Shown: positions 771 through 53,240, counted from the stretch's first letter. The stretch is DNA of 64,000 bases from Asterias rubens (GCF_902459465.1 NC_047075.1:4402001-4466000), one strand, 5' to 3'. Notes: generated from the letters alone by a model not told the origin. Numbers and translations: made by a program.

Positions 771-1299
771 GTTCTAATAGTTCTGTATCGTGCATAGTTT
801 TAAGTAAAAATTATGACATTTGATATTTTGGTGTTAACGCTTTTTTGCTAATCATAAGAATGTTTAGATATTTTTTCGTAAAAATCATGACATTAAGTTG
901 TTGTATTAGTCTCATAAATTATTTCAAAACATTAAACGTTTTTTCTAATCAAATCACTATTGAGATAGATCTTCACTGTAACTCGATCACTATTTACATA
1001 AACGAAGCAGCGGCTGATTTCACAAATTAATACAAGCCTCATCTTATTTAATGATCAATGAAGCTGATGAAAAGATTTAATTGGACCGATCCATCAATCA
1101 CCATCATTCCATTGGCCAATCACAGCCGCGAACGCGTGCCAAAAAGAACCAACTCACTTAAATCCATAAGCAGTGTAAACAAGTATATTTATTACCCGCC
1201 TTTCGGGTTTGCTTTGTCATTGTGTTTGTTCGTGTATTTCATGTTTTTCTTCATTTTTTTTATATTATGAATGGCATTTAACTTCCTTTTTCCTCCCAG

Positions 1300-17658: not shown

Positions 17659-20600
17659 ATGTCTGCTGAGAGCTTCAAGCAACAACTTCAAAACCATCAA
17701 CTACTGGACAAAAACATGAATAGGGGGTTAGCTACAAGACATCATTTCCCTCTATGGCATCAGCTAAAGAGATCCAGATTCAAAGGCATCATTCTGGCCT
17801 TCATTGCGATTGCTTTAGTGTTGTGTTTTTTTTACCCGAGACTTTGGCGCATTAAATGGTGTTCATCCACGACACTGTTCAGTAAAGTATTCGTCAAGCA
17901 AAACCAGAACTTGACGTTGGTGATCTTACCGAAGGAATTAGCCGATGAGAAAGGAGCATACTGCCTAGACGGGGGTCCACCATCGTATTATATTCGTGAA
18001 GGTAAATATTTTTTAGGTTTGTGCAATAAAACAAAGGCCGTATACGAATTGGCGGCCACGGCTACGGCTACGGCTGGATCGCCGCGTCATCATGCATTGA
18101 AGTATAGGAGGCCCTTAGCAACTTCCCTGGCAACGGTCCTAGCGGCAGCCGTAGCCACCAATTCGGATACGGCCAAAGAACTAAAGAACGGTGCAATAGA
18201 CCTTAATCAGGGTGTGGCCATTTTGATTTTGCTGCATTCCAACTCATTGTAACCAAACTGAGGCTGGCATAAAATAATGCATGTAGTCAGGTGCCATGTT
18301 TGTGCAATGGATGTTAGCATTTATTGCAGTGGAAACAGGGAACATAACCAAGATGTGACAACTTGACCAAGGTTCAACCTCAAAGCTGACAGTCGGGGCC
18401 CAATTTCATGGCTCTGCTTACCGTAAGCACAGAATCGACGCTTACGGAAGCAGGGAATTCTGTGCTTACGGCAAGCGTATTTCACGGGTTAGCGGCGAAT
18501 TTTGGCTTCTGCGCGTGCGTACTCCACGTTTCTAGGCATTCTACGCTTACAAGGCTAGCGCAGAAATTCGGCGCTTGCATGTAAGCGGGGAATCGCGATC
18601 GTAAGCGCAGAATTCGGCAGTAAGCAGAGCCATGAAATTGGGCCCGGGTTGGTTCAGTGGGTTGGGTTTTCAGTCCCTACCTGTATTGTTTGCATTTCTA
18701 GGGTTTCCTCCCACATAAACAACAATTGAATTTCTTCATAATTCTATCTACACTGTAGGTATCTTCAGGCATACAGGTCATATATTGCTACAATGTAGTC
18801 CCTTTGAAGGGTCCATTGCTGGAATAATGTAACAGTGAGCCAATTTACGGGCAACTAGTTCCAGGCAATCTCCACGAAGAAAAGGCATTCACATTTGAAT
18901 GTTCACCTATTTCTCTTGTGGATCGTAAGACAATGTTTGAAAACTGACCTGTGTGCTACCTAAATGGTCATGTACAATGTAGTATGCACTATAGTTGGTT
19001 GCCTCCAAGTTGCCTGCAAAAGTTGCCTACGCTGACAAGGCCCGTATGAAACTTTTTTCGGTGCAAAACAATGTTTAATTTCATTCTCAGAAACAAAATA
19101 AAAAACAGTCAGAATAAATTGCAAGCTATAAACCTCAAGATATCTGTTAACTTGGTATGAGATCACGATAAGAAATGTTAAGTAGTACCTGAGGAAAACC
19201 CCAACATGAGAACTACATGTTCAATTACAAAAGTGAATGAAAACTAAACCAATCAAATAGACATGATGTCATTGGATTTCAACAACTACAATGTAACATT
19301 GGGTCCATACTTCCAAAGAGGAATATTTTCTCAGTCAAAGCGTCAAATTCAAGGACTTTTCGATGTACATAATTGAAAATCAGGAATGAACCAAAACATT
19401 GCTCTCAGAATGATGTACCGGTAATCGGATGAATTGGATGGTGACAGATTTTGCCCATCATGATAACGTAAAGGTTAGAGACTAAACAAATGTCAAACAT
19501 GAGGACTACAAAACTGTATTAAGACATTTTCTCACTCTTTGGTTTTAATTAATTTGCTTTATCTCCTCACAAAGAGGAAACTGTTATAAATTTTCATATT
19601 TTCAGGATTGCATATTCAAATACTATTATAATAATAATAATAATAACCTTACTTATAAAGCGCTTTTTACAAAAGCGATACAAAGCGCCAACGAAATACA
19701 AAAGGAACAAAACAAAAGATAAACTACATGCTTTTCAGACAAAACAATGCAGTTAACAACGATACAATCTAGAGTAACTTAGGATAGAGGTGGGTTTTTA
19801 ATTGGGATTTGAAGGAACTCAGGGAATTGGCTAAACGAACAGATTGAGGGAGACGATTCCAGCATTTTGGCCCAGTTGCAGCAAAAGCTTTAGATCCTAC
19901 ATTGGTACGTGATCGTGGGGCATTCAATACAACAGCTGAAGTGGATCTTAAATTATACAGAGACTGGCGGGTGTGGAGAAGGTTGCCCAGATAAGTTGGA
20001 GCTTGGTTAGAGAGTGATTTATATGTGAGTACTGCGTTCTTATATTCAATCCGTTGCAAAAATTATCCCCGTTTGTTTTCAGCCAAATCAAACTCTACGC
20101 GGCACTCATGGCTGGTGACACTTCAAGGTGGGGGCTGGTGTTGGAATGCTTCGGATTGTTACAATCGTAGCCTCAGTCCACTTGGCTCCTCCTACAAACT
20201 GCCAGCCCAGACTCCATTCTATGGCATCATGTCGGCCAATTACACAGTCAATCCGGAATTCTATGACTGGAATATGGTGATGATTAACTACTGTGATGGG
20301 GCATCCTTCTCAGGTATGCTTTTCGTTTTAAAGGAACATTTCAGAATTGGTTTTGCTAGCAAAGAAGTTGCTGTCAGTGTAAGCACTTTATGTAATCCAC
20401 CATATACATAAACTGACAAACCTGTAGAGGTTTGAGATCGATCGGCCATCTGCGTCACGAGAGAATAGTGAAAAAAACGATTACAAATTTTGCATTGCAT
20501 TGATGCCAAAACAAAAATGAATAAAACGCTCACTGAGCGATAAACTCCAAACGCGATATAAGATTATTTATTTCTCATTAAATATGAGATTACAGACAGA

Positions 20601-23586
20601 AATATTTCAAGGGATGTTTTCTACTATCATCATCATTAGACCATGTAAGTTTTACGTAAATCTGTGAGCTTCACAATTTTTGTTTCTTACCAATTCTGTA
20701 ACGTTCCTTTAAAAGACACTGGAACTGGACACCTTTGGTAATTGTCAGAGACCAGTCTCCCACTTGGCATATCTCAACATATGCACAAAATAACAAATTG
20801 GTTGTCGAAGTTGTGAGATAATAATGAAAGAAAAAAAAAACCTTGTCACACAAAGTTGTGTGCTTTCAGATGCTTAAATTCGAGACCTCAAAATCAAATT
20901 GAAATATTTTTGTGGAAAAATACTTTTTTTTCCTACGCTACTTCAGAGGGAGCTGTTTCTCACAATGTTTTTTATGATCAACAGCTCTCCATTGCTCTTT
21001 AACAAGTAAGTTTTATGGTAACAGTGATTACCAATAGTGTCATTTGTTATTTTAAATGGCTCGCTTGTTTTAATCCCATTAAAATGTGGACACAATAAAA
21101 CTAACGTCAAAAAATGTCATTACAAAAGTTGTGGCTGCTGAATGCCCCATAGCACCCTGAGAAAACCCTTATAGGGTGCTACATAATTGGGTCTCAGAAT
21201 TCCTAGCTTCAATAACCTATCTTGCTGTATAAAATGTAACATAGAGTTCTCTGTCCTTATTTTATGCATGTACTAATCGCCTTGTTGGTACGTGCGCTAT
21301 TAACTAGACTGAACAATATTATCATTGTTACTATTAATATAGGAAAACTCCTTCATAGAATTTCAGACTGGAGGATTGAGAACACAGTCAAGACTGACTC
21401 TGACTAGCGCCCTCATGCGGCCAAAAATACGGTCACAGGTTTTTGGATGGTTAAGAGTGCACTCTAGTTTTCTTTGGTTTCCAACTGTTTCTTGTTTTCT
21501 TTTTTTGTCACCTGCAGGTAATTTGGAAGCACCTGTCAGATACAACAACACCGCCGTCTACTACCGTGGGGCTCGAGTGCTGAAACTAGTCATGGCCTAC
21601 CTGATTAACACGACAGGGTTACGAGTGGCTAAAAAAGTGATACTAAGCGGTGTTTCAGGTAAGCACATAATAAGTAATAATATTAAAAAGCATTTACAAA
21701 GCGCCAAAAATCTGCCTAAAAAGATGCTGAAGATGCTTAATACTTGGTTAATTACAATTATTATAATAATAGTACCTTGTAATTTGTATCTTTCTCTCAT
21801 TGTATTTTGTTGTTCTCTTTATGCGCTTAGAGGCTTTTTGCATAATTAGCCATTTTACAAAATGTCTTTATTATTATCATAAATAGTGGCTACTCATATA
21901 GCGCTCAAATTCATCACGAACCAATCAGATAAGAGGAATCAATGAGGTATATAAAACAAAATATTACCACCAATAGGAAACCCTTACAATTTGTTTCCAT
22001 TTTAAACTCCAAAACCCATTTAAAAATGTTTAATTTACTTCTGTTCCCATGTACATGTACAGCCGGAGGCTTAGCAGTGTACCTACATGTGGACCAAATT
22101 GGTAGCATGTTCCCAGAGAAGGTAAACTTTCGTGGCATCGTAGACGGAGGTTTCTTCTTAGATGAGAAGAACATCTCTAATTATCTTCACTACCAAGCCC
22201 ACATGAGGCAAATCTTTGCCATGCAGTTAGTTGAAGGTAATAATGCTATTAATGCTAATAATGCTTTTACCTCATTTGTTTTGTTTGTCTGTTTTTGTTT
22301 TGTGTTTAATAATAATACTTGTAATAGCCAGTTTTTATATAAAGCACTTCCAACATTATTACGAAGAAGAGTAGGGGTTACATGTACACAGCAAGAACCT
22401 TTGAGGTCTCCCGAGGCTTGTGAGTTAATACAGTGACTAAGTTCACTTATGAGGCATGCTTGGTTTCATTTATATTATACACCATTCATAAATACCTCAG
22501 ACAGTTTCGATATTCCTATTGTAGGAGAGCGCATCACGTGGGTGTGTATAAACCTTTATTTATGACCGGTAAAAAGTGTTAATTTATGGGCGTGACACGT
22601 GACCTTGCACCTGTTCTTATAAGACAGTTTCTTCATTCCTATAGGTCGAGAGCAACACTTCGCCTCGGTAAAATTATCAAGAACCAGGCCTCGTTGGGAT
22701 TAAACCACTAGTTGAAAACCTCTTCACCACACATTGATTCCCTTAATAATACCTGCTCCACCGAGCTTAGCTCAGCTTTGTCCCGCCTTCAACCACCTTC
22801 AAGCAAAGCCTCCAAGACAGTACTTCAGCAGCATCTACATGTAGCAACAGAGTCCAATATTCTCCTGAAGATGATCAGAGCATACTGATCAAAAAGTTGA
22901 GTTGTCAACCACCGGTTCTTTTCAGAACCAACACTACTCAAAAGATGGTTCTACCCCAAACCTCAGCTAATAATGATACAATGAATATAATAATAAAAAT
23001 ACGACTAAAAGACTAAATTCCTTTTCATTATTTTACAGACAGCCTAAACAGGGGTTGTCTCTTTGCCGAAGGAATCGACGAATGGAAATGCTTCTTTGCC
23101 GAGTACACGTACCCCTACATCAAAACTCCCCTCTTCATCATCAACTCAGCCTATGATTACTGGCAGCAGTGGTTCATCTTAGATCTCCGTTGCCATCCGC
23201 TCCAATGTCCAGACAAACTCAAATACCTCAAGAGGCATCACACAATATTCCTCCAAGAGATTCAGCGCGTGTACCATCACCCGAATGATGGGATGTTCAT
23301 CAGTTCTTGCTACGCGCATAGCCACGCTTTTCACGACTCGACGTGGACCTCGTATAAAGTTGGCGGGAAATCTGCCAGGGAAGCTGTCGGAGATTGGTAC
23401 TTTGGTCGGACGCCCCCGGAGAGGTCCAGGTACACTGACTGTAACACGAAGTACAACTGTAACCCAACGTGTGCAAACTCATGGACTGTAGAGTTTTACA
23501 AGAACACCACGGATCGCATGAAGAACACAACGTCAGATTTTTTCTACAGCCCTCACAAAAGTGATCATCTTTATGTGAAGAAGTAA
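17659..23586 (+). CDS. Pectin acetylesterase/Notum-family hydrolase, paralog 2 (5 exons, about 478 aa, N-terminal hydrophobic anchor)
   Basis: Exons 17659-18001, 20083-20313, 21518-21658, 22063-22236, 23039-23586 total 1437 nt in one frame. Motifs: AYCLDGGPPSYY, WLVTLQGGGWC, NPEFYDWN, YCDGASFSG, GVSAGG, NSAYDYW, SCYAH. Hydrophobic stretch GIILAFIAIALVLCFFYP. Start codon uncertain (17659 or a later ATG). Confidence 0.9.
18036..18174. mobile_element. Short MITE (139 bp), possible AAA target duplication
   Basis: ggccgtatacgaattggcggccacggct / agccgtagccaccaattcggatacggcc, 3 mismatches in 28 bp. Confidence 0.65.
18396..18645. mobile_element. MITE with GGGCCCAATTTCAT termini, in PAE2 intron 1
   Basis: Perfect 26-bp TIR gggcccaatttcatggctctgcttac. 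Confidence 0.78.
19625..20058 (-). mobile_element. 5'-truncated L2/CR1-clade LINE 3' end
   Basis: QRIEYKNAVLTYKSL...APTYL...LRS...AFAATGPKCWNRLP...FKSQLKTHL is the typical ORF2 C-terminus, followed by a gcgc stem and (TTA)n tail. Confidence 0.85.
20328..20712. mobile_element. TTAA-flanked MITE, family C, in PAE2 intron 2
   Basis: Near-identical to 8161-8546; starts 14 nt after the exon-2 donor and abuts a family-B element. Confidence 0.82.
22862..22901 (+). ncRNA. Degraded hammerhead-like motif in PAE2 intron 4
   Basis: ctc-CTGAAGA-t-GATCAG-agcata-CTGATC-aaaaa-GTT-gag. Confidence 0.35.
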
Positions 23587-25570: not shown

Positions 25571-28261
25571 CTTGTTGTACCTTATACCTTACGTTAACAT
25601 TATCATTCCTCTTCTCGAAGTTCTGTTGTCATCTTCAAACATTATTACGTCGGACTATTCATTGTTTAATAAGTAGACGAACAAGAGACAATTCCCTCGT
25701 ACCCGCGGTTGTTTCGTACACAGTGCTGTAAATCGACCAACGCTGGGAACGATCAAGGTGATGTACACCGGTGTGCATCACTTTTCATGTTACCCAGCCC
25801 GTCGAGCCATGTAACATGCGTATTTGTTGCACGGCACGTGATTGGTTCTTGACCAATCAAACTTCACAATTTGTACAGAGGTATAACAAGAACGTATGTC
25901 ACATTTCTGTTTTGCATAATTTATAAGCATACATGTACATTTCAAAGGTCACCAGGGGCATTGCGCCAATTGCCTTAATGAAAAATCAGGCCGGGTAAAC
26001 TCTGCCAATCTTGGAGGAATAGAAAAGGTAGTTTGAAATAACAGCTGAGGTACAGCTTTAGATGTGGTTAAAAACGAAAGTCAGGGACCGAGTGAAACTT
26101 GAAATAAACTTTTATTTCTTAACTTGTAAATTTGTGTCTTTTTCAGATAACAATCTGTACAGGTACAATTTCAAACTGAAATATCTAAACATCTCATCTG
26201 TCGAATATGAACTATAAAATAGTCCACCTTCCTCTAAGGGAGGTATACAATTAAATTGTAAGAATTTATTGTGACACCCCATGGCAAAACAACGTTTCTT
26301 GGAAATAGCAAAATGGTATTAAAAGTGAAGACAACTTAAATATCAGCCATGAAATCAACGTGATGTGAGGTTTCAAACATTTTATGCTGAGAAATACAAA
26401 CCTTATTGGCCTAAATTATGGGGGAAATGTTTAAAAAGCCCATTTTTGAAGTGGGAGGAACTGCCTTGTTTTGGCATGAAGCGTCACAATTGGAACAAGC
26501 TATTAAAATTTGTGTTAACTTCATTTGTAAAAACACATAGGTCAAGTATACTTTTTTAACAGATATATTTTTGTCATGGTTTTATGGTTAACTTAATTAA
26601 TACTAATTGATTTTGATTGAAAATTCACACAAAAAAATTAAATCCCTAATCATTCAGTGTAGAACATGCAACCTTTGTGTACAAAAAAGAGCGACTTTGT
26701 ACATTCCAGGGCACTTTCTGGCAGGCAAGGTACAACATCCATGTACACTGACCATATCAGAAATGTTTACATTCATGTGTCAAAACTTCCACATAAACTC
26801 AAAAGTTTTAACTTAAAGGCAATTCGAGGCATGCTTGTGATGTCATGGTCTGTACAATAATGGAACCACAAACTTTTTAATATTTACAAATCTAAGTTGT
26901 GCTTTAATTAGTTAGAAAAAAAAAGAAAACAATTCAGATTAAGAATTTCAAAACCCTGAATAATAAGACACAGGTGCCTTTTAAAAAGTTTATCTTATTT
27001 TTAACATCCTTTATTTTAGGACCTTATCAACTTATCCATCTTGGTGTTAATTTTGAATCTTGTGATCAGGGAAAGCGGATTTAAAACCCTTTCACATGGC
27101 AGTAATTTAACAAGGGTCCCTTGCTTAATTTTAGCATGGTTGCAAAATTTCAACAAATGCACCTGGTGTGAACGGACAATATTGTTTTGACTGTCTATAA
27201 AGTATGGACACAATTTCTCAAGGGACCTCGGACAGTCCAAACATTGTCGCCCTTTCACACGAAGTGCAGGCTTGCTCAAATTAAGCAAGGGACTCCTGCT
27301 AAACTGTTGTGTGAAAAGGGCTCTAGATTGCATACTCTCAGTACTACTACTAATGTTTAATGTGCCTTGCAGATGTTTTACTCTTGGAGTAGCTTGGGAG
27401 TAGCTTGTATTCTAAAATGATTGTGTTTAACGTTAAACCTACAGTCTGGCGACTATAAATTAATTTTTCTAGTTACAGCCGCCCGTTGTTTGTGTACTGT
27501 TTCTTATGAAGTCATGGGAGTGGTTTAGTGTTGTAGCCACGGTGGGGGTTGCTGGGCGGGCCTGCCCTGGGGTCGATTTCACAAGAGTAAGGACTTGTCC
27601 TAGGAGATATTAAGACCTTAAACCTAGTCCTAAGTTAGGACGAGTAACTAGTCCTTACTCGAGATAATACTAGTCTTGAAACAATTTTGCACAGCACTCC
27701 GAGCAAAATACATTGTGCCGTCCAGCACAGATTTCTCCCAGATATCCACAAGTTGCTTAAGGAACAATAGCAACAAAACCTTTGAAAATCCCTCTATAGT
27801 GCAAAACTCGATGTTTGAAAACGGTAATAACCAAGATGATGACCAATGCAATAGTAAATTGGTCTTTGACAACTACTTCTGTCAAGATGCTTTAATACTT
27901 ATTCACATTTCCAAATACTTTTTCCAGAGCCACGTTTTCTGCTTGGCTGTAGACGTCCAGCCTTGGTGTTCCATGGCTATACATCTAATGCAGATGAGCG
28001 CTCTCAAACTTTGTATCACTTCCAAGGGAATAATCATTCATACCAAAACAGTTACTAAAGACTGGAACACATTACCACCACAGTTACTAAAGACTGTTAC
28101 TAAAGACTGAAACACATTACCACCACAGATATCATATCCACCAAGGACAATAACACATTTAAAGTATACCCCGGGAAGTGATACAAAAATAATACTAATT
28201 AGAGCGCCCTCATGCGGTCAAAAATACAACGCACTGAAGTATTTCCTTTTTTAATCCTGAA

Positions 28262-31200
28262 TCAGGGTTGACTTTTACAGCACTGCCATGTACCAACGAC
28301 CTCCCAGTCGCTTGAAGCGTTGTCCAAGCGATGAATTCCAACTCCAGAAACTAAAGTTTGAAGGGAAATAAGAAAAGTTTAGTTTTTATGAATTGCATAT
28401 ACAATGGAAAGTATTATACAGACAAAATAAAGCAGTATTTTTTTAAGGGATATAAATTGTACATCACTGGTCAGAAAGGTACATCTGCGAGTTAAACAAA
28501 CAACAATATAATATAGGCCTATTAATTATTTAAACAAAAGCTTCATATCATATTGACATAACAAAGCACTGTACCGTTACAAATCCACAAATTATTCAGA
28601 CATATAGATTAAAGCAATAAAAAACAACAATTTATTACAAAGTTACAGTTGACTTTTGCGATTTCCCATGAATGTAAGTAAGGAAGTGTCAAGAAGCTAT
28701 AACTGACTTTCCTTTTCCGCTCAGAAAGTCTGTTTAAAATTAATATTATTTAATGGAAAAATGCTCTCCCTATCACATGGACATCACAAAGTGCTTGACA
28801 ATTAAAAATCCAGGAAGAAGGCCAAAGCAAAATCCATGTATATGACAAAAAAATATATAATACACAATGCACAGCTAGTTAGCCTGTGTGGGGCAAAAGG
28901 TCAACACAACACATGGATATAGCCATACACAAGTTTACAATGATTCAATCGGCCCCAAAAATTACAATATTTCTGGAATAAAATAAGAATATGATGCAAA
29001 GTAGTACACAAATAGCTCTATCACACTATCCCTCCAAAATGAATAGTACAGCCAAAGCCACTCTGCCAAAAGGAGCCAAAGCCACTCTGCCAAAAGGAGC
29101 CAAAGCCACTCTGCCAAAAGGAGCCAAAGCCACTCTGCCAAAAGGAGCCAAAGCCACTCTGCCAAAAGGAGCCAAAGCCACTCTGCCAAAAGGATATAAC
29201 ATGTACAGGCCTGATACTTCACGGAGGCAACTGAGGCGATTGCCTCCGTTGCCCCTTGCCATTGCCTTGGTGCCCTTGAAATGCTCCAGTAGAAATTTGC
29301 AATTTCATTATAGGGTGCCCTTTGCCAAAGAGAAAATGCCGCGGTGCCCTTGCCCTTTAAAAAACGAAGCATACAGGCCTGCGTGTATGTATGCTTTCTG
29401 AGTTTTTGTGGCCAAACTGGGAGAAAATTCCTTTATGGCATTTCCCATAACGTGAACTGTCGACTTACCTCCCCACGTATCGTTCCATTGGCTGGAGGCG
29501 AAGACTACCTCTCTAAGCTCCATCTCTAAGAGGATTTCCTCGCTGAGACTCGTGGACGGAACGAACGACTCGCTATCCCTTGCGGCATCCAAGACATCGG
29601 GCTTGATGGCGAACCACGACTCACCAAAGTCGTGGCTTCGCATTATGGCTAGGCCATGGTGTGAGAGGGCGTAGAGGGTGTTTGTGAGAGGGTCCACACC
29701 CAGGAGGTTTCCCACAGTCGAATGAAGGGCTGTCGTGTTAAACGATAGATTGACAATTGAAATGAACTTCTAGTTAGTGGTAGTTGGAAAATTGTTGTTG
29801 CTGTCCGCAACAGTTTAAGTAATGTTGTGAATTGAATTGCTGTATAAGGGAAGAAATAAAATATACTATTGTCCAACTTTATGTCGGGGCAATATTTGAT
29901 TTGTGACTTGACTCGACTTGCACAAATTTGACTTTTGACTGACTTGACAGTTTGGGAAAATTTGACTTGTAACTTAACTTGACTTGACTTGCCAAAAGAA
30001 AAAAGAAAAATGGGTAAAAGTCACCTGGAAATGGAATTTTTTTCTTTCAAACATAAGAGTATATGCTTACGAACAATAAAACATTTTTTTTAGTATTTGT
30101 TTGTCACGATTTATATGTTTAAAAAAATATATAAAGTTGTTTGGGGGCTGACTCCGCCTACCCCTTTTGTGACGTCAATCCAGGCAGACTTTGCCTGCAA
30201 TGCGTATAGTAAACACACGTGCAAAGTACATGTACATCCAAGTGAGTTGGTACATTTCAAAAAGTGTTTTTCTGTATTCAGCAGCAATACACCTGGTCGG
30301 CATTTTTGTTTTTAAACGTACAAACTCACGACTTGGTCCTTACATGTACTTTGCAATTGTGTTTACTCTATGCATTACAGGCAAAGTCTGCCTCGATTGA
30401 CGTCACGAACAGCACCCTCTCGGGTCGGGGTCTACTCTTAAATTTGTAAATAACATAAGAACTGATTTTTTAAAACCTTAGTTGACTGTTTATTCACATT
30501 CCACTCATCAAAACACATATTATTAGTGACAAAAGCTTTATTTTGAAAAAATACCACTTCCAGGTGACTTTAATACCATGGAGAAAGTAATACCAACCTC
30601 TCCAATGTGTTGTCTCATAGATCTTTTCAGGCTCGACACATCCACAAGCGCAAGAGCAAACCTCAACCTCTTCTATACAGAGGCAAGACCCGATCCTGTG
30701 GCTCCAGTCCAAGAAGGTGCAGCTCTGATTGATGATAAGCTCTGGGTGATGGAAACATTCACAGCTGCAGTTGCAAGTTCTGGGCTCTTCGCATGTGGTG
30801 TTGTCACAGACCTGCAAGCAGTTGTTGAAGGCTGACGAGTTGTCGCAGTGGAATTGGCACGTTGTTAAGTTTGCGTATTGAGGGAGTGCGCATTTATCGG
30901 AGCATTTCGCAGGCGTCACCACTGAGCTATGGTTTACGACAGTTACGTTTGTGGAATCGCAGCTGCCGGTGGTTACATTTGAGCATGTTGTATTTGGAGC
31001 TGATGCATTCTCACTATCCGCGCCCTCGATAGTAGAGTTGTTGATAGTAGAGTTGTTCTGGCTTTCTATTGTCCCATTTGCTTGGCTATGACCAGGCATA
31101 CCATCCTGCCTGTGGGAGCAGCCTGAAGTGTTTGATGAGCTGCAGTAGTTCACGGTGTTGTTACAATCAGCGAAACACTCCCTGTGGACGTCAGGTCTTA

Positions 31201-34200
31201 CTTGCTCACAGATCCCAACACAGTTACCAGAGCAGGAATTGATACAGGATTCCAGTGAGTTACGTGTGGTAGATGTTGAACGACTGGTAGAGTTGCTTAT
31301 GGTAGAATTGGAACAGGTGGTAGAGTTATTTATGGTACAATTTGAGCAACCAGGAGAGTTGCACATGGTAGAATTTAAACTAGTAGAGTTGGATGAGTCA
31401 GTTTCATTGTAATAACCTGTTTCCATATTCTCCAAGTTGGCCGACTCAAGTGTGCAGTTTCTTTGTGTACCATTAGAGCTGCTGTAGTTATTACACTGGA
31501 CATCACAGATCTGAAGAAGAAGGCTACAATTTTGCAAGCAGCTTTGGTAGTGTAGATACTGCATGTTGCTTACACAAACTGGGTACTCGTAGTCCATTGG
31601 GCCGACTGTGTTGGATTCATTAGTTGCATCAGGCCACTCGGTCGTGTTGCTCTGCAGTTGTGTCTGGTTGACGCTGCCAGTCGTAACATTCTCTGCATCT
31701 GCAGAGTCGTTGATGCTTCTTCTGTGTAGTCTGTGACCAGAATTGGATGGTTGTCGACTTTCCGTTTGAGGCTTGGCTGCCAATTTCCGATTTATGAAAT
31801 CAATGACATAATTTAAAAATTTCTTGCCATAACCCGGTCTATCTTCAGTATCACCTCCTCCACCTAGTGCAGAGTCTATCCAGCCCGAAAAGAACCTGGA
31901 CGGTTCAGATGATGGTGATATCTGTTCTTCCTTACCAGTAGTCGTCAAGGTGCTAGACATCCTCATGGTATGCGATTCTCGACGAAACTCACCTTCTTTC
32001 AAATCCGAGGTTTGGATTCGAGTCTGACTACCTTGCTTTCTCAATTTCTTAACAGAATCCTTTAACAACAGCCTACTGTATGCCTCTATTCCTTTAGTTT
32101 TCCTAATGTGCTCTTTTATGTATCTCCGCTTCATCTGGTCATGGATTATGATATTGGGGATGTATGTCTTCCTTGGATGACCATTAAATCCTCCAAGGCC
32201 TGTATAAAGAAGCTCAACAGGCAAACTTCTTCGCCTCCTCTGGTGACCAACACACAAGTTTGAATACTCGGAGCAGTTTTCCTGAGAGGTGCAGTTTGAA
32301 GATATAAACTCTTGCAGGCAAGCTTGGGTACAGTTTGCAGCACTACAGTTTGCATTCTCCAAACATGTCTCATTAGAAGCATTGTGACAAGGACTGAGGC
32401 AAATGTGGTAAGCTGTACAGTTTGGATGAATGTTGTTGTCTCCCGAAGTGCCCTTGATTGCTGTTGTGTTGTTGTAGGGTGCTCTTGAGCAGTTGGCATA
32501 GCTCTCCTGACAAGTTGGTAGGCAATCAGGACACGATGTGCAGTTTGTGCATTCAAAGTCACAGTCAGCTTTGCTGCCTTGACAGTCTCTTGTGCACTGG
32601 TTGAGGAATGTTAAGGTATGGCAACTTGTGTAGCACTTGTGATGATCATAAACACACTGATTGGCACAGGTTTCAAAACATTCTGTGTCATTGAGGCATT
32701 CTTCACAGTTATCAAGACAGATATAAAGAGAGCTATTGCAGGACGATACACAAGTGTTGAATGACTGGTACATCATGCAGAAGCTTTTGCATGTCTCATT
32801 TTTAGTTTCAGTACTACAGGAAACAGCAGTGGTGTCATTTGAAGTGGTGTTATATGTCTCACTGGCATTACAAACTCTGACCTCTGACATTGATTCATTC
32901 AGGTCCAACTCGGAACATCTGTCGAAAGAGCAGTTCTGCAAGTCTGTCCAATTGGCAAAGTTCAGATCCATGCAAAAAGAATACCCAAGACTGCAGTTCA
33001 GGACACAATGAGCGCCAACATCGGCACCGGATGAATTGTCTCTTGAGCAGTTCTGCGCACATTTTGTAAAAGTCTCTTTGCAAAGCTTGACTTCGCCTGG
33101 AAGACAGAGCTCACTGCACACCTCCTCACTTGAGGAGCAGTTGGTCTGGCAGCTATCGGTACAACTACAGAAAGTGCAGTTGTCGAGACAGGTTGACCGA
33201 CTGTCTTCGCATGAAACTGGGAAGCATATCCCCAGACACGTCGACTTCTCGCTGTTACATTTCCAATGGCAGTCATCTCGACAGTCCAGGCAGTCGAGGC
33301 AAGTTTCAAAACATACATCATTCACTTCTTCACAGGGTAAACTGCAATTCTCAAACACCAGGTCGTATGTGCACTCGTATGTGCACACTTGGTAGATCTG
33401 ACCACAATCCTGATAACAACCCAAGGACTCATTGAGCACCACTGATGTGTTTTGCATCACACAGTGGTCGGTGCAATTCTCAAACTCTGTCAAACAGGTG
33501 TTGGAGCAGTTGGCAAAGACATATGGAAAAGTGGTTCTGCACTCCTTGACACAATGGCCTGTCTTTGAAGTCGAGGACGTTGTCAAACTTGATGCTGTGC
33601 TTCCTAGAACTAGTTGAGTAGTGTATGTTGAACTACTGCCAACAGGAATGGGAGTCGTAGTAGAAGCGGGAGTAGTAGAGTTTGGCAAGTCAGTTGGTAG
33701 TGTTTCTGTAGGAGTACCTGAGGTACTGTTAAAGCTGCTTGTGTTCTCATGTTGGGTCCAGTTGGAACAACTGGACATGCAATCGGAGAAGCCGCCCTCA
33801 AATGTTCTATTCAATGTTGCATTGCTGTAACCATAAGCATAGGTGTGACACTGCGCTGAACAGTTATCGCTGAAACCAGTCTCTGGAAAGCAGATGTCTG
33901 AGCAGCTTCTGATACTGAGCAAGTCAAAACAAGGGACAAGGCAACCAATGCTCGTGGCAACACAACCTTCTAGGCAAGTCACATTCAGAAATGTCCTTGT
34001 ACTGGATTCTGAAGTGTTGACTGGTCCACTAGATGTGTTTTGGAATCTGGTGATATTGACTGTCAGGTTCTGGAGGCATCCAGGTAGACATTCAGTAAAG
34101 TCCGCACTACAGGTCTCAGTACATGTATTCACAGGATCAACTGTAGGCTCAATGCATCCAGTCATACAGCTATTAGTTGCAGCACTGCAGTTTGACCCGC

Positions 34201-37200
34201 AACCATCAAGGCATATTGCCTCACATCCACAGCAAGAAGACGAACAGTTTGAATACTGACGGAAGCAAGGCTCCTCACATGGGCACTGATCTCTACAATC
34301 TTCAAGGAACCCACCACAGTCTGTGTGACAGTTAACCATTTCAACAGAGCAGTTAACTGGGGTGAGCGGCAAGGTTGTTGGTGCCATAGTAGAGCTGATA
34401 TTCCTCGCTTCAGTACAGTTTCTTATTAGTTCTTGACAGGTTGAACTGTTGGAAGTACCATTACAAACTACAGACTCATTGAAGCAGTTATTCCCATAGG
34501 TCTGATTTCGTGGGATAGTTTGGTTCCTGTCTCTATGGGCACTGGCAGTTACATTACAGTTGCCAGACTGATTGAGGCAATTAGATCCGTTGTCTGAACC
34601 CACGGTTTGATTCCCTGCACTTGTCTGGTTCCTGTCTCCATAGGCACTGGCAGTTACATTACAGTTACCAGACTCATTGAGGCAATTTGTTCCATTGTCT
34701 GATTCTAATGTCTGATTTGGAAGACTATATCCTCCACATGGATGGCAGTCCTGTCTACATGTTTTAAGCCGTATGTCACAATTGGGCCGACAATTCACAA
34801 ACGGCATGATACAGTCCAGGTTACATCCGTCGAACTGATCTGCACAGGAGAAGCTACATGCTTGAAGGCAGCCAAAGTCTGCTGCACAAACATCTGTGCA
34901 GTTCTCAACACAAAATCCACGATTCAATACGCAGTCCTCGAGACAGCAATGCTCATCACAGGCCTCAAATGTCGAAAAGCAAATTGAGGAGCACTGGCTA
35001 TGGCACACGGTGTCAAGACCAAGGGAGCAATCTTCAATTAGCTTGCTACTACAATTCTGAGCTTGACTTGTGTTCCAACTTGTGCAGTTTCCGCTTGTGC
35101 AATTTGTGGAAGTCGAGTATAAATGTTCATCTACTGTTTCGTTCTTGGATGTTGTATTGCCTGATGAATAATCTGTACAGTTGACAGCTTCTATTGTAAC
35201 CTCACAGATCTCCAAGGCACAAGTCTGGTTACAGTTTCCTTCACAGTAGCTCAGCTCATGGTTGCAGTCCGCTGTACAAGGTACGATCGGAGGGTCGCAG
35301 TCTGTGCTGCAGGAGTCAAAGGTCATTATGCAGACATTCTGACAACCAGACGAGCAGATGTCATCCTCCTTACAGGTATACAGACAGTTATCAACACAGA
35401 TGGTTTGATTGAATCCACAGTCATCCATACAGCAACCCTTTCGGCAACGGTCCTCAACGCGGACGCAATCCCAGTCGCAAATCTCTGTACAGTTCACCTC
35501 AACACCGGGGTAGTGTACCTCCTTCTGACCCTTGCAAACCCCCTCGCAGACCTCCTGGCATGCACCCCTGTCAGAGGTGCAGTTATCAGTGCATGTGTCG
35601 GGTGGTTTGACGCAGTCGAATGCACATACTCCGTGCGTGAGAGAGCAATCTAAGGTGCAGTTGTAATCGGAGGTGCAGTTGTAATCTGAGGTGCAGTTGT
35701 GATCTGAGGTGCAATTCATCGAGCCAACGTCCCCTGCTAATGTGCAGTTGCTGCAATCAAGGAGACACCCATCTGAAACGGAACTGCAAGAGTCTAGACA
35801 GCATTCTTGGGTACAGTTTAAGTGATTGCCTGTGCAATCAGAGAGGCAGGCTTGTAGCTGATTGTAGGTACAGGATGTGCAGTTGTGACAGGTGTCCTCA
35901 CATGCTGATTGTATCTGCAAATCGAGACAAGAAAAAAAGAAGATAAATTACCAACTGACAGATTTGCAAGAAACAGGGAAAAAATAGACACAATTTCTTG
36001 GCTCTGATGCCCCCAGAATTCTGTGTTTAAAACGTCATTCTCCGTTTACTGTGCAAGCGCCGAATTTCTGCGCTAGTTATTTAAGCGAAGAATACCTACC
36101 TAGAGTACACACAGGCACAAGCAACAGCTCCCTGCTACCGTTTGCACAGATTCCATGTTAGCTTTTCTACAATTATGTAGGATTTAAACAATCAAAATCT
36201 TCCAAAGCCGAAGCTATACATTGCCATGAAATAGTTTTTTGTTATCAAAAGAATAGAAAATCAAACCTCTAAGCAGTCTGGAACACAGCCACAGGAGCAG
36301 TTTTCAGGCTTGGGTTCAAACTGTGAGCAGTTTTCTCCAAGGGTCAGGTCCCAGACGTAAGTACAGTTGCAGAAGTCATCACAGGTTGGTGGTAATTCCA
36401 CCTCGTAGGCCGGTAGGTTACCCGTCATGAAGCATCCTCCTTCATAACTGCAGTGGGGCGGAGAAGTTCAGGGTTGGAAACAATTTATATCAATTACCAA
36501 TTTAATTCTGTAAATTGTAAATTTTATTCTTGTTGTCTATATTTGCTATGCCTTTCTTGTATGTATTGTAGAGTCTCCTTTACACAGGGAAGACAAATTT
36601 CATGTTTTTTATCATGACAATAAAATATTTTAAGTTTTAATCTTTAATCTTTAATAGAAGTTAACATTTGCTTTGGGATGATTAATTTAGTTGGTTAAGT
36701 ATCCTTACACAAATATGTTTTCAGCACTATATACTTTCGTAACTGCAGTGGGGCGGAGAACTTCAGGGTGGGAAACAACTCATTATCACTTATTATGTTT
36801 TAAGCACGGAATACGCGGTTCTTCCCAAGGGTTCTGTAAAAAAAATCACTTGGTGGGATTGGAGCCCACGACCTTTGCATTGCTAGAGCAGATGTCTTCC
36901 CACTAGTCCATTGGCTTGAGGAAGTTTGAATACTTAGAAGCGGCTACAAGGACTTATAGATTTCCTTTTCCTTTTTTCCGGTTCGAATCCCACCTGAATG
37001 ATATGAGTGGGGATTTTTTTGTTCAAAGGACGGAAAAAAGGGTTTATTTTTCTCCACTATTTAATGGGATTGAGGGTGATTTTTGTCAAAACCATTTAAC
37101 ATGTTTAACCATAAATCTACTAAAATTTATTTCACTATTAGCTTGCATATAATAAAAGATACAGTGTACAACCATTTGAAAAACTGTTAATGTGGTGGAT

Positions 37201-40400: not shown

Positions 40401-43400
40401 AAAAAGCACTTGAAGAAACAGCCATTAAAGAAGTACATGTATATTGAAAATTACCAAAATATAAAACCTAGGGGAAAAGCTTTGCAAAGAAAAATAAAAA
40501 AAAATAAAAACAATAAAATAAACCAGCAACATTAAAATTCCTTTGGAAAGAGGAAAGTAAAAAAAAAACACTAGTTGCTGTGACGTCATCACTCTTTGCG
40601 CATATATGACGTTCTACTATTTTCTTCTTGTACCCCCTGTTTCGGGCTAAATGGTATCACAAATAAGTAACAAAAACAAAACAATGAACCCTCCTTAATA
40701 ACTCTCTGAACCACGGTAGCAACATTTTCACAGAATACGCAATTAACTGACTGGGAACTGTGTAGAAAACTGATTTCAAAAGTTTTTTGGGGATAAAGAT
40801 TGGTGTTGACTCACCCTGGTACAAACCCTTCAATCTCTGGTGCTACCCAGACGTTCATATCCAACCAGATTGTTCCAGCCTGTCAAATAAATAAAATAAT
40901 GTACACATATCAATTTGGTTTGTACTCAAACACTGGTTTTTAATAAGGGAATCAATGTGTGGTGAAGAGGTTTTCAACTAGTGGTTTAATCCCAACGAGG
41001 CCTGGTTCTTAATAATTTTACCGAGACGAAGTCGAGGTAAATTATCAAGAACCAGGCCTCGGCGGGTATAAACCACTAGTTAAAAACCGATTCAACACAC
41101 TTTGATTCCCATTCATTAATACCTTTTCGGTCAAAAAGTAAAATAAATGCAAAAAATATAATCGTTCAATGATTTCCTTCAACACAACACCCCTCCAGCT
41201 ATGAAATGGTAAAGCCCTCCACTGCCCTCAGGTAAACAACTCCTTATAAGGGAATGCTGTGCACGTATCGCGTGATGTGGCACAACTGTCCCGGCAGGTG
41301 CTCTCGACCAATAGGAATGAAGAAACTGTCTTATAAGAACAGGTGCACAGCTCGCGTGTCACGCCCATGTTGTTAACACTTTTCACTGGTCATAAACAAA
41401 GGATTATACACACCCACGTGACGTGCTCTCCACCAATAGGAATTGCGAAACTGTCTGAGGTATTTATGAATAAGCATTTGTAATATCAGGTTGTTGTTTT
41501 TGTTTTGTTTTTGGGGTAGTGGTGCAGAAAGCTGTGAGACAGTGATTATCAAATATTGGTGTAAGCATTACAATGGGAATGCTCCACTAAAGAAAAACGC
41601 TAAAAAGGAACATCCTTTTCCTCTGACAACTCACACCTGTTATATCAATGTAATTAATTTACCAAAACAGTGGATCATTTTGGATCATGCACAAATCACT
41701 GGTGCCTTGGAAAACTAATCGCACAAAGGAAGGACAAAGGAGCTGATGCATTCCTTGAAGATACAAATGGTTTGGAGCATGGTCAATAGTAATCAGCTGA
41801 TAAATGACAACATTATTATGATTATTATGATTGATGTACATTGTACTTACTTCAAGTCTGTATGGGGCAGACGGCAGGATAGTAGGGGTGTGTTCCTCAC
41901 CGTGATCGTAGGTAACAAAGGGCTGTAGAATCTCAGTGATTCCTTTGGTAAGCAGAGGGGTGATAGACAGAGTGATATCAAAGCTGAATACGTCCTGTCA
42001 AGAGCAAGATTGTTAGTTATATAGCGTCTAAACTCTGGTAAATTTTAGTAGGGCACAAATGGGGTGCACTGAATCTCATATGAATTCCTCCTAAAGCAGA
42101 GGGGTAATAGACAGAGTGATGCCAAAGCTGAATACGTCCTGTCAAGAGCAAAATTTTCAGTTATTAGCAGCGTTTAAACTCAAGTTAATTTCAGTGGGGA
42201 ACAAAAGGGGGTAAACTAATTTTTCTAGGGGGGCACTTCTGGCCAAACGCCATTAGTGAGTTCTATTTGAATAATGCCTGGCACAATGATTTGCTTAGTA
42301 ACAAGTTACCGCTCAAATTTGAATTCCTCAGACTATAGAGACAAGCGGGTTTCAAACGCTTTTCATCGACCAGATCGTCCGATCGGAGGCAACATGTTCC
42401 TTTAAAGCCTATAGTGCTTACTTCCCGCGAGTGCGAATGCATTATTGGAAGTCACAGCTCTGGTTCTGCTAAGCATGTTTCGTGAGAGTTCAACACGCCT
42501 CAACTCTTCAGAAATATTCTTTGAACATTTGCAGGAAGTATGAAAAGTGCTATTACTCTGGTTAGTTTTAGGTGTCAGAGGTCCAAATTTCAAATGGGAC
42601 GGGGGGAAGGTGGTTCACGGATATCAGATGTGGAGGGGGCATAATTCTTAATGCTTTCTTTACCTCCTGTTCATCATAGAGTCCTGCATACCATTCACAT
42701 TGCTGCCTAGCTATGGAGCCTTCCAAGGGGCCGTAGATCAGAATAAAATCTGCACCTCCACAGGTCATGTTAGAGTTACCTGCCAAAAAGAATGTAAACT
42801 AATAAAGGCCAAAGGGGTCTTACTCTGTGTAACGTTTGTTCAGTTTATGAAGACCATGCTGATGATGTTATGGTTTGTCACATCAACTAATAATAATCAT
42901 AATGTAACGGCGCTCCACACTCCGAAAATTGGGGCCACCGCTAGTTATGAAATGCCACTAATAATAGTTGTCTTAAAACACAAACAACTCAAATGAATGC
43001 ACAAGGAAAATTTATAGAATTTCACGATTATTTAAATGATTTTAATAAATCTTTGCACTATCATTATGGTCGCCCAGGGGAGGCAGTTTACTTATAACTC
43101 TCTATAGCAAAACATGACCAGACAACTTAATGAAATACAAAGCAATTAGCGGAACCAGCTAGAGCAATAACATGAGGATAAGTGAGGTTTTGTTGGGTGC
43201 ACTACAGCACCCGAGCAACAGCAACTGCAGTAGCAGTGGGCACTGCATGCACATGATATAAATATTAGCAAAATATTACTGACAAAATTAGGTAAGGAAT
43301 GAGCAAGGCGAATAATGACACGAGGTAGAAAGAAAATAAGTAGTACTTACAGCACAGTACGGATGCGGTGGTGGATAGTCGCAATCCGTATACATGTAGG

Positions 43401-45236: not shown

Positions 45237-46063
45237 CTGAAAGTCGGGCAGAACGAAAGCGGATACTATGCAAAAAGTTGACTCTTTTGTCACCATTATA
45301 CATGTACAATGTAGCTAACAGCAAACTCAAAGCTGTCTTGTATTTTAGGAAGTGCCTTAATTACCAAAATGTACCCTGATGCTGAAGTAACGTAGGGCAT
45401 TATACACGTACTTGTAAACCAGTTAAAGCCATTGGACCCTTTCGGTACAGAAAAACAAAAAAAAGTTCACAGATTTACAAATAATTTACAGGGTTTACAG
45501 AAGGTAATGGTGAAAGACTTCTCTTGAAATATTAGTCCATGAAATGCTTTACTTTTTGAGAAAACGGTAAAACAATATAAATTCTCGTTAGCGAGAATTA
45601 CGGATTTATTTTAAACACATGTCATGACACGGCGAAACGCGCGGAAACAATGTTGGGTTTTCCCGTTATTTTCTCCCGACTCCGATGACTGATTGAGCCT
45701 AAATTTTCACAGGGTTGTTGTTTTATATATAAGTTGTGATACACGATCTGTGGGACTTGGACAATACTGTTTACCGAAAGTGTATAATGGCTTTTAAGTA
45801 TTATATTGAAAATATTGATCGTGCAATTAACACAACCATCTCAACTTGAAGAAGCCGTCAGACCATTGTGATGGAAAAACCCTGCTCTACTGGAGTACAA
45901 TGAAAGGGCTAAACTATAGAAGCATTAGTGAAAAGGTTTTCAATAGGCAATTAGTCAGGAAATTATTACACCACAGGCGTAAGCAGAGCGGGAAGAGCAC
46001 AGCCAATGAAAACACGCTACAGATGATGATGGTGTATGTCTTCAAGCTTTTGTCTTGTGCCAT
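45237..46063 (-). CDS. Tentative 5' exons of the minus-strand gene (46063-45970 and 45265-45237)
   Basis: MAQDKSLKTYTIIICSVFSLAVLFPLCLRLW + L + SAFVLPDFQ splices in phase to the 43904 exon (IYLGNC) and gives a hydrophobic leader. Donor sites (T|gtaata, G|gttgag) are weak. Confidence 0.3.
45423..45797. mobile_element. TTAA-flanked MITE, family A; empty site present in the paralogous block
   Basis: Filled site ccagTTAA[agccattgg...taatggctt]TTAAgtatt; empty site ccagTTAAgtatt at 63193-63205. Confidence 0.88.
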
Positions 46064-46267
46064 TTTTCTTTCTTTTGCTCTCACTCTCTCATCGCTGTGA
46101 AATGCTGATGTCAATGGGTGGAGTTTAAAATTGGTTGCGACCGAAGATGTGGTTCATTTAATCCGTCTATGAAGAACCGTCAGTGTCAGGACATCTTTTC
46201 ACAGTCAGTTAAAGGGGGAAAATTAACACACAAAACATCTCTCTGATAGAATCCACGAACATTCATC

Positions 46268-47266
46268 ATGGAAGTTATGATGATCATAATCTTGGTTAAG
46301 ACTTTGATGGTACAAACCTGCCAGGGTGAAAACCAACAACAGTTCAGCGAACCGTTTTACCTGGCTGAAAACCAAGCCTTACTGAATCATGTGTTTCAGT
46401 TGAAGACTGTATCTTCTCCTGTGATCTGTGGGAGAGACTGCTCTATGGATCCACAGTGTGCATCATTCAACTACCACATCATAAAAGGTATTTGTGAATT
46501 GAATATTGCCAGCAGAGCCCACAGCCCTGATGACTTTGTTGAGATTCAAGGAAGTGCCTACTATGATGACAACTTGGACACTTTATCATTTTCACTACCC
46601 AGCACTACCACTACAACAAGTTACAGTAGTTGTCTGGAGATGTATCAAGCTGGTTACAGCATCAATGGTTTATACACCATCTTTCCTTCAAGCGTGCCTG
46701 ACGGGTTACAGGTTTACTGTGATATGGAGACAGATGGAGGAGGCTGGATCGTGTTCCAGAGGAGACAAGATGGCTCTGTTGACTTTGACCGTACCTGGGC
46801 TGATTACCAATCTGGGTTTGGTGATCTGCAGAATGAGTTCTGGTTGGGGAATGATATCCTTCGTGACCTTACTGGATCGGGTCAATGGCAACTCAGGATA
46901 AATATGGAAGATTGGCAGTCCAACACAGCTTGGGCTTCTTATGGTCAGTTTGCTGTTACAGGTGACAAGTACACTCTCCAGGTTGGTTCATATGATGCTC
47001 AGAGTACAGAAGGTGATTCAATGGCATGGCATGATGGTCAATCATTCACAACGAAGGATCAGAACAATGATGCAGGGTCTGGTTACAATTGTGCCGAGGG
47101 ATATGAAGGTGCCTGGTGGTTTAAAGCTTGCTTTCGTGCTCATCTGAACGGTAAATACTATCCACAGGGAGAGGTGTCATATGCACAGGGAATACAATGG
47201 TACAGCTGGAAAGGATGGTACTACTCCCTGAAGAAATGCAGCATGAAAACACGGCAAGTTTTGTAA
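46268..47266 (+). CDS. Secreted PAN/Apple + fibrinogen C-terminal (FReD) protein F1, 332 aa, uninterrupted CDS
   Basis: Signal peptide MEVMMIIILVKTLMVQTCQG; PAN pattern VICGRDCSMDPQCASFNY...CELN; S/T linker; FReD VYCDMETDGGGWIVFQRRQDGSVDF, EFWLGND, FTTKDQNND, GAWWFKAC..HLNG. Confidence 0.93.
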   Translation: MEVMMIIILVKTLMVQTCQGENQQQFSEPFYLAENQALLNHVFQLKTVSSPVICGRDCSMDPQCASFNYHIIKGICELNIASRAHSPDDFVEIQGSAYYDDNLDTLSFSLPSTTTTTSYSSCLEMYQAGYSINGLYTIFPSSVPDGLQVYCDMETDGGGWIVFQRRQDGSVDFDRTWADYQSGFGDLQNEFWLGNDILRDLTGSGQWQLRINMEDWQSNTAWASYGQFAVTGDKYTLQVGSYDAQSTEGDSMAWHDGQSFTTKDQNNDAGSGYNCAEGYEGAWWFKACFRAHLNGKYYPQGEVSYAQGIQWYSWKGWYYSLKKCSMKTRQVL

Positions 47267-52673: not shown

Positions 52674-53240
52674 AAGCGAATTGTTGGAACATGAATTGAT
52701 TGACATGTTGAACTGGAAAGGTTATTTTCTTTGCTGTAAGAAATGCCAAGAGACTATCCCTTTGAACACAGGGACCAACAACTCATCAACGGTAGGATTT
52801 TTAATCATGTTAACATTGTCAATTGAAATGTTAAAGGAACAGAAAAAAGAAAAGATTTGCTAAAAACAAAAACCAGCTCATTACCAAATCAAATAAATCA
52901 ATGGCTGTTTGGCTCTGGGTTCAATAGGTTACTTATGGATCATTTTCTCAGTCAGGACAATGATTGTGCTGAGCAAGAAGGTGCCTGGTGGTTTTATGCC
53001 TGCTTTACTGCTCATCTGAATGGTAAATACTATCTACCGGGAGACGTGTCATATGGACAGGGAATACAATGGGCCTAGTGGACAGGACATGACTAGTCTA
53101 CGCCCTGAAGGAATGCCACATGAAAATACGGCAAATCTTAACTCATTGACCAAAGACAGGGAACTAAATGGAATGACTGGAGTGGGGATCATTACATACT
53201 CCCTGAAGAAATATATGCATGAAAATACGGGAAGTAATAT
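52510..53240 (+). pseudogene. Decayed FReD C-terminal fragments
   Basis: About 52960-53135 reads DNDCAEQEGAWWFYACFTAHLNGKYYLPGDVSYGQGIQWA* and then stops. Further echoes of tactccctgaagaaatgcagcatgaaaatacggcaag lie near 52605-52645 and 53195-53235. Confidence 0.75.

Follow-up and report, generated by a model that had tools for sequence, protein, structure and literature searches.

We describe a giant coding exon in a 64,000-nucleotide stretch of Asterias rubens DNA (GCF_902459465.1 NC_047075.1:4402001-4466000; hereafter the window, with positions counted from its first letter), whose product is built from a repeated cysteine-rich module that we predict to fold as a long, ladder-like helical hairpin. 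On the reading we favour, to which we give a probability of roughly 0.45, the exon (30598..35914, minus strand) is an expressed part of a lineage-restricted animal gene and encodes a giant glycoprotein ectodomain, each module of which would be a hairpin held together by ten nested disulfides.

An original prediction, made from the sequence alone, had placed an exon of 5317 nt with 1772 open codons at 30598-35914, and both the interval and the open frame are confirmed, on the minus strand. A plus-strand reading of the same interval was rejected, with stops throughout. The minus-strand frame 30494..35920 (1808 codons) is the sole open reading frame (ORF) of at least 150 residues within 29-38 kb. 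The exon itself comprises 1772 codons and one extra base, starts in phase 0, and is delimited by the ORF, by splice signals and by RNA-like contigs. Its acceptor at 35914 (ttgcag preceding ATA) has a polypyrimidine tract and AG ahead of it, and its donor at 30598 reads GAG followed by gttggt. Contigs from four small RNA-like runs (two each for the window's organism and a relative) were placed on 29400-35399. A joint between 30598 and 29729 on the minus strand, which skips 868 nt bounded by GT..AG, is found in the contigs of all four runs, and pieces of contigs are spread along the giant exon; the unique part of the intron 29729-30598 is covered by none of the contigs of these runs. The giant exon is thus a real, transcribed and spliced part of a gene, and the spliced joint, seen in two organisms, bears out the transcription and inclusion on which the original prediction hung. 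As a separate observation, contigs of all four runs pile up over the intron stretch 30000-30597, with summed depths between thousands and hundreds of thousands and with many variant joints and loose ends; the stretch looks like a very high-copy element, a repeat of the short interspersed element (SINE) or miniature inverted-repeat transposable element (MITE) type carried in many transcripts.

Cysteine is the commonest residue of the translated frame (218 of 1808), and the gaps between successive Cys residues peak at 3 (84 times) and 6 (41 times). The exact spacing C-x3-C-x6-C-x3-C, referred to here as the 16-residue unit, occurs 30 times in the exon with overlaps allowed, 29 times without an internal Cys and 26 times without overlap, compared with a mean of 0.36 and a maximum of 4 in 1000 residue shuffles. 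The earlier count of at least 26 exact units therefore stands, and the four 16-residue examples quoted with it are all present. Within the units, the residue preceding the second Cys of each CX3C is Asp or Asn in 17 and 12 of the 30, and the fourth residue of the six-residue gap (x6) is frequently Phe or Leu. None of the 38 intra-unit x6 gaps contains Pro, against about 7 expected at the background of 3.2%, and among x6 gaps Pro is found only in three that lie between units. A longer motif with six Cys residues, C-x3-C-x3-C-x5-C-x3-C-x3-C (6C), is found at three places in the exon, where shuffles give 0.006.

From the succession of Cys gaps it is clear that the 16-residue unit is not the top-level repeat. 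Segment-wise BLAST comparison of the exon with itself identified a duplication of residues 137-235 at residues 299-391, with identity up to 40% (E 1.6e-16), and six segments of about 100 residues could be aligned with MAFFT, sharing 15 invariant Cys residues at 28-34% identity. Each consists of four units and four extra Cys, 20 Cys in total, in the pattern C-x3-[C3C6C3C][C3C6C3C]-x3-C-x5-C-x3-[C3C6C3C]-x6-[C3C6C3C]-x3-C. The central x5 keeps its length in five of the six modules, and a Pro-rich x6 separates units 3 and 4 in most of the six. All six were recovered when the genome was searched with their profile. In order along the protein, and all on the minus strand, they are module C1, of the 20-Cys type (exon residues 17-130; 35525..35866), module A, which served as the reference (138-240; 35195..35503), module B, the duplicate of module A (300-396; 34727..35017), module D (518-616; 34067..34363), module E, which carries Cys-containing insertions (829-960; 33035..33430), and module F (1029-1145; 32480..32830); all are placed by the alignment. 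Linkers between modules run from 14 to more than 100 residues and are N-glycan-rich and mucin-like. At the level of sequence, the real repeat is thereby shown to be a module of about 100 residues and 20 Cys, present in at least six copies, rather than the 16-residue unit.

For a view of the fold, we modelled module A with AlphaFold2 (AF2), using the six internal copies as the alignment. The predicted local distance difference test score (pLDDT) was 66 overall and 80-87 around residues 31-60, which include the tip. The model is all helical (helices at 5-44, 48-67 and 81-94) and forms a long hairpin, the second arm of which is interrupted at the Pro-rich x6; one continuous helix spans both CX3C pairs of a unit. 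A single-sequence run on 316 residues reached a pLDDT of 38.6, too low for use. Several properties of the sequence bear on the same point. The Cys periodogram shows a peak at 3.6 residues (z 7.5) but lacks one at 2. The Cys offsets within a unit, 0, 4, 11 and 15, correspond to helical angles of 0, 40, 20 and 60 degrees, which places the four residues on one face, and together with the hydrophobic residue at offset 8 they fall within an 80-degree arc of the helical wheel. The absence of Pro from x6, the 3.6-residue periodicity and the one-sided Cys agree, independently of the model, with a helix that runs through x6. The 16-residue unit is therefore probably one segment of a helical arm, and the original claim that each unit is a hairpin module is not supported, given the continuous modelled helix, the 38 Pro-free gaps and the size of the true repeat. 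The AlphaFold check proposed with that claim had a divided outcome: a ladder-like helical hairpin is predicted, at the level of the module of about 100 residues, and in the model the 16-residue unit forms no hairpin of its own.

The module as a whole is predicted to be a long alpha-helical hairpin. Its tip matches exactly the 6C motif defined for plant alpha-hairpinins (PMC11591084), and the modelled hairpin superposes on vicilin-buried peptides with a root-mean-square deviation of 1.1 Å over 39 residues (9q1l_F) and 2.4 Å over 46 residues (6o3q). The Cys residues of module A fall into two perfect mirror sets, an inner one of five pairs with position sums of 94 and an outer one of five pairs with sums of 100; the offset of 6 between the sets corresponds to the Pro-rich bulge, which lies opposite the CC junction. 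From these positions we infer a disulfide connectivity of ten nested rungs. Each unit would then contribute four turns of alpha-helix, its four Cys all on the same face, and each module would form a single antiparallel hairpin, with a 40-residue first arm carrying units 1 and 2, a five-residue tip, and a second arm that breaks, between unit 3 and unit 4, at the bulge of the Pro-rich x6. An inner ladder of five disulfides around the tip and an outer ladder of five would zip the arms together. Slightly more tentatively than for the reading as a whole, we suggest that the module represents a new class of extracellular domain, a single hairpin with about ten nested disulfides, which arose through internal duplication within a taxonomically restricted animal gene and serves as a rigid rod in a giant glycoprotein.

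The surroundings of the modules suggest an extracellular setting. There are 114 N-x-S/T sequons, against 35.2 +/- 4.6 in shuffles, and 38 of the 114 have the form N-C-[ST], for which 4.5 would be expected; Ser and Thr together make up 42% of exon residues 701-800. The many sequons and S/T-rich linkers of the original prediction are accordingly borne out. The protein is acidic outside a basic central insert, in which the basic residues are concentrated. On our picture the exon supplies the bulk of the ectodomain of a mucin-like, acidic protein of giant size (about 2000 residues or more), which is very heavily N-glycosylated and probably held in the membrane by a C-terminal transmembrane (TM) segment. 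The modules would act as rigid, protease-resistant rods, joined by the glycosylated S/T-rich linkers into a scaffold at the cell surface or in the matrix, and cleavage at two furin-type sites flanking the basic insert could release the N-terminal part with its six modules. As read from the sequence, both the membrane anchoring and the furin-type cleavage are putative. A rigid, glycosylated extracellular scaffold is our best guess at the function, and with the rapid change of the linkers (see below) recognition or matrix roles are conceivable too.

Several observations weigh against this architecture. The confidence of the AF2 model is only moderate and its six-row alignment was built from internal repeats; shallow alignments are prone to yield long helices. 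The rungs were read off the positions of Cys in the sequence and not from Cys-Cys distances in the model. Structural matches to the model lie within the noise expected of helical hairpins (Z <= 7.4, Foldseek E > 1), and searches with Foldseek (pdb, afdb_clusters), VIA-align in wide mode and an atlas shape search returned generic helical hairpins only. Mirror symmetry is not diagnostic, since the unit is both palindromic and periodic: 117 centres have at least four rungs, shuffles reach seven, and a scan that counts rungs cannot, for this reason, locate the true hairpin centres. At least two other nested registers are self-consistent, and the first junction within the module ranges from 0 to 8 residues among modules, as would suit a loop. 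Single-sequence AF2 gave a beta-hairpin for the first unit, with a pLDDT of about 72. At the level of the gene, the hydrophobic segment that is our TM candidate has 15 residues, short for a plasma-membrane helix, and a search for a signal-peptide exon or 5' end found no convincing one.

The alternative registers just mentioned would retain the ladder architecture and move the turns, and we consider them unlikely, though the most serious competitors of the long hairpin. In a zigzag arrangement, a half-arm with five Cys would pair with a half-arm of the adjacent helix across the module boundary; alternatively, each module could hold two short hairpins of 4-5 rungs, with turns at the junction that is either CC or up to x8 and at the Pro-rich x6. 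Module C1 at its end and module A at its start do together form a perfect five-rung mirror set (centre 134.5) and a 6C motif with a 14-residue loop, units 3 and 4 likewise give a mirror set about the Pro-rich x6 (centre 209.5, six rungs), and the variable first junction is loop-like. Set against this, the duplication that relates modules A and B comprises exactly a four-unit block, which argues for a self-contained domain, and the linkers between modules vary in length over the whole range given above. A CC junction of zero residues is impossible as a hairpin turn, whereas the turn of the AF2 model sits at the x5, the segment of conserved length. For module F, 6-7 rungs result from the long-hairpin register and two from the short-hairpin one. 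Because of the duplicated block, the conserved x5, the inability of CC to turn and the variable linkers, we prefer the long hairpin within the module.

It is improbable that each 16-residue unit is an independent alpha-hairpinin mini-hairpin (C1-C4, C2-C3), with about 26 of them in a string and possibly a defence-peptide precursor as the whole. The spacing lies within the published motif, C-X3-C-X4-20-C-X3-C, plant precursors carry up to 12 such modules (PMC11591084), and the exon has its 26 non-overlapping units. In the AF2 model, however, the helix continues through x6; Pro is excluded from x6, where a loop would tolerate it, and the hydrophobic residue at loop position 4 extends the helical stripe. 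The units adjoin with zero linker. Their five-residue arms would also be shorter than in any solved member known to us. Neither the units nor the modules have dibasic sites between them, and in being acidic the modules differ from typical antimicrobial peptides. The basic motifs of the exon number only four, all of them within the central Cys-free insert, and the defence-precursor role raised in the original prediction, for which processing sites between modules would be needed, is correspondingly unlikely.

Disulfide-stapled beta-hairpins are less probable again. The arthropod peptides tachyplesin, polyphemusin and gomesin have the related spacing C-x3-C-x4/5-C-x3-C, the two strands of the single-sequence model speak for such a fold, and Asp, Asn, Gly and Ser are enriched in x6 and just before the second Cys. 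Yet the model became all-helical once an alignment was given, the Cys periodicity is 3.6 rather than 2, there is a hydrophobic residue at i+8, and neither Pro nor Gly is enriched in x6. Least credible of all is metal binding by Cys-lined helices through reduced thiols, as in ascidian vanabins or the Csp copper-storage proteins of bacteria: Vanabin2 (1vfi) and Csp proteins appear among weak Foldseek matches at 18-22% identity and the modules are acidic, but those matches have E > 4, and the sequons, mucin-like linkers, furin-type sites and probable TM segment point to an oxidizing location in the secretory pathway.

Sequence searches returned no relative. No Pfam family matched the whole 1808-residue translation with hmmscan at E <= 1, PF02363 included, nothing in Pfam matched the flanking exons and segments, and residues 85-400 had no match among PDB sequences at E <= 10. 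Word-indexed homology searches with the whole 1808 residues, with the module alignment and with the C-terminal 580 residues found nothing, and neither did an exhaustive phmmer search with residues 3-1200 against 1.84e9 representative proteins, where it should be noted that the protein libraries also missed this genome's own protein and that their coverage of the lineage may be thin. A feature search of the ESM Atlas with residues 80-400 gave no usable match. Protein and profile searches of the organism's own genome (417.6 Mb) found only the modules of this gene; two marginal matches on another contig have four stops each and were rejected. The suggestion of a possibly undescribed protein thus holds for Pfam, PDB sequences and the representative proteins. 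The gene looks lineage-restricted, where 'orphan' denotes the lack of a relative in what could be searched.

Among known systems, plant alpha-hairpinins and vicilin-buried peptides offer the closest likeness: CX3C pairs on antiparallel helices with ladder-like nested disulfides, as predicted here (PMC11591084, PMC7191063). Alpha-hairpinins are found with the search motif C-X3-C-X4-20-C-X3-C (PMC11591084), their two CXXXC motifs lying on different antiparallel helices joined C1-C4 and C2-C3 (PMC7191063), and solved helix-loop-helix peptides contain 0, 2 or 4 disulfides (bioRxiv 10.1101/2020.05.26.118075). The original prediction was right that the spacing falls within this pattern: the Cys motif C1-X3-C2-X(4-20)-C3-X3-C4 is matched 30 times at n = 6, the tip of the module conforms exactly to the 6C motif, and plants too have multi-module precursors. 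In alpha-hairpinins the two CX3C pairs sit on two helices, whereas both pairs of the 16-residue unit are on one predicted helix; no processing sites that would release a short peptide flank the modules, and no sequence similarity to known members was found. The known peptides reach about 55 residues and have two disulfides (three are predicted for the 6C class), compared with about 100 residues and about ten predicted disulfides here, in an acidic animal protein that carries N-glycan sequons, is giant and is probably membrane-anchored.

A second likeness comes from the Cerebratulus lacteus neurotoxin B-IV (1vib), the sole match when PDB was searched with the module profile (E 0.11, 15.8 bits; not significant). 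B-IV is an animal helical hairpin with four nested disulfides, and the stretch aligned to the profile has the C-x3-C-x6-C-x3-C spacing; we take that stretch to lie on a single helix. A nested ladder between helices with C-x3-C-x6-C spacing, as in B-IV, would be compatible with the module pattern and the model. B-IV differs in being a 55-residue, basic, secreted toxin with four rungs rather than a repeated module of an acidic glycoprotein, and the match is not evidence of homology. The module thus shares a structural principle with alpha-hairpinins and with B-IV and is not a member of either family. Other animal secreted proteins rich in CX3C-spaced Cys are those with the nematode C-x3-C-x3-C repeats of PF02363 (C_tripleX), a cluster of which was among the shape-search matches (template-modelling score 0.40); that family has neither the six-residue spacing nor the 20-Cys module. 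At the level of the whole protein, membrane-tethered mucins resemble it in the giant ectodomain, S/T-rich linkers, extreme glycosylation potential, a candidate site of internal proteolysis and, probably, one TM segment at the C terminus. They differ from it in that no SEA, vWD, NIDO/AMOP or EGF domain was found here with Pfam, in that N-linked sequons dominate, and in that the structured parts are new Cys modules.

Comparison with the relative indicates how the different parts of the exon change. The giant exon differs by 2-8% per contig, and the gap letters in two of the relative's contigs number 18 and 9, both multiples of three; the frame is maintained in the relative. Divergence is 2-3% in the Cys arrays, about 5% in the S/T-rich C-terminal part, and 8.3% with the 18 gap letters in the basic insert, which suggests a tighter constraint on the Cys arrays than on the linkers. 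Of about 280 differences between the species, 38 were scored by codon, all of them from the C-terminal part or the next exon, and the 22 non-synonymous and 8 synonymous changes obtained from this C-terminal linker region are near neutral; one of the scored changes replaces Cys with Phe. The selection claimed in the original prediction is accordingly supported only in part, by the open frame, the in-frame gaps and the lower divergence of the Cys arrays, and not by the codons scored.

Between and beyond the modules, all on the minus strand, the exon contains further repeats and low-complexity stretches. An 18-nt repeat of 3.7 copies (N-C-T-S-D-H/Y; 35647-35713) expands the tip of module C1, and a 33-nt repeat of 3.9 copies with 71% matches, rich in N-S-T, lies at 31267-31391; these microrepeats, on the evidence of their sequence, appear to show an ongoing, slippage-type expansion of sequon-bearing segments. 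Two N-glycan-rich tandem repeats of 35 residues (34490..34726) have 75% amino-acid identity and a period of 105 nt. A mucin-like S/T/P-rich linker without Cys (exon residues about 717-787; 33554..33766) forms a 71-residue Cys gap. After module F comes the basic, Cys-free insert of 225 residues (31577..32251), the most diverged stretch between the two species, which is bounded by the furin-type sites R-R-R-R (32228-32239) and H-R-R (31718-31723). The exon's C-terminal part (residues 1447-1772; 30598..31576) is Cys-rich and N-glycan-rich, holds one exact 16-residue unit and ends in a region with a C-x-C-x-C motif.

Sequence reading extends the gene on both sides of the giant exon. Upstream lies a candidate exon of about 60 codons (36267..36447) with 10 Cys, a C-x-C motif and a phase that fits the giant exon; it has weak pairwise similarity (E 0.001) to the end of the giant exon (30599-30850), and C-x-C or C-x-C-x-C regions may therefore flank the array on both sides, as a second, shorter type of repeat that brackets it. 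Farther upstream, an ATG-initiated ORF with a Leu-rich, signal-peptide-like start (43172-43254, minus strand, about 6.8 kb ahead of that exon) was considered as a first exon and not accepted, its donor being weak. Downstream, the next exon (29469..29729), fixed by the RNA-like joint and by contig ends at the exact coordinates, has 87 codons, no Cys and an Asp-box-like S-H-D-F-G-E-S-W. Its language-model neighbours are BNR/Sortilin-Vps10 clusters at 0.94, a weak lead, and no Pfam family, BNR and Sortilin-Vps10 included, matched it at E <= 10. A BNR/Vps10 propeller was rejected on this ground and for the reason that about 100 residues are too few; what the exon encodes may be one degenerate blade or else an unrelated domain close to the membrane. 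The following intron contains a perfect 24-nt tandem repeat of 6.0 copies (29050-29194, 100% matches), which gives rise to spurious repeat ORFs on both strands. Two further candidate exons fit in phase: one of 57 nt with a good acceptor and donor (28294..28350), and a last coding exon (27757..27878) with the 15-residue hydrophobic segment, K-H-R, a short tail and a stop. The interval 27690-27870 is present at a share of 1.00 in the RNA-like runs X1 and X4, both from the window's organism, consistent with a 3' exon that would belong to this gene.

The plus strand of the window carries Notum/pectin-acetylesterase-like and fibrinogen-related genes, including an array with PAN and fibrinogen-related domains (PAN-FReD), a set typical of an invertebrate animal. 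Two multi-exon genes at 1209-4772 and 20025-23586 share motifs such as N-Y-C-D-G-A-S-F-S-G and appear to be a local duplicate pair; we take them to be Notum/pectin-acetylesterase-like carboxylesterases. ORF pieces at 12541-14479, with a coiled-coil-like N-terminal exon, belong to another fibrinogen-related gene, angiopoietin/ficolin-like by eye. The array comprises tandem single-exon genes with PAN/apple and fibrinogen-related domains at 46268-47266, 54411-55403 and 60795-61612, the third split over two overlapping frames and probably frameshifted, and a short FReD fragment at 52857-53078 between the copies. Its flanks are repeated, with 49115-49339 equal to 57219-57443 and 45846-46100 nearly the same as 63249-63503.

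If the long-hairpin reading is correct, the module would surpass every known helical hairpin in cross-linking, its roughly ten rungs more than doubling those of described ladders, of which solved examples have at most four. The CX3C ladder, so far a feature of small defence peptides in plants and of a few toxins in animals, would here appear for the first time in a structural domain that is repeated along a giant surface glycoprotein of an animal. For protein engineering, such a module could offer a scaffold that is hyper-stable and sequence-tolerant. For the lineage itself, a complex 20-Cys domain would have arisen and been amplified within one lineage-restricted gene, and the combination of constrained Cys arrays, fast-changing linkers and a cleavable basic insert would make its product a candidate for roles in surface barrier formation, adhesion, matrix or recognition in a marine-type invertebrate.

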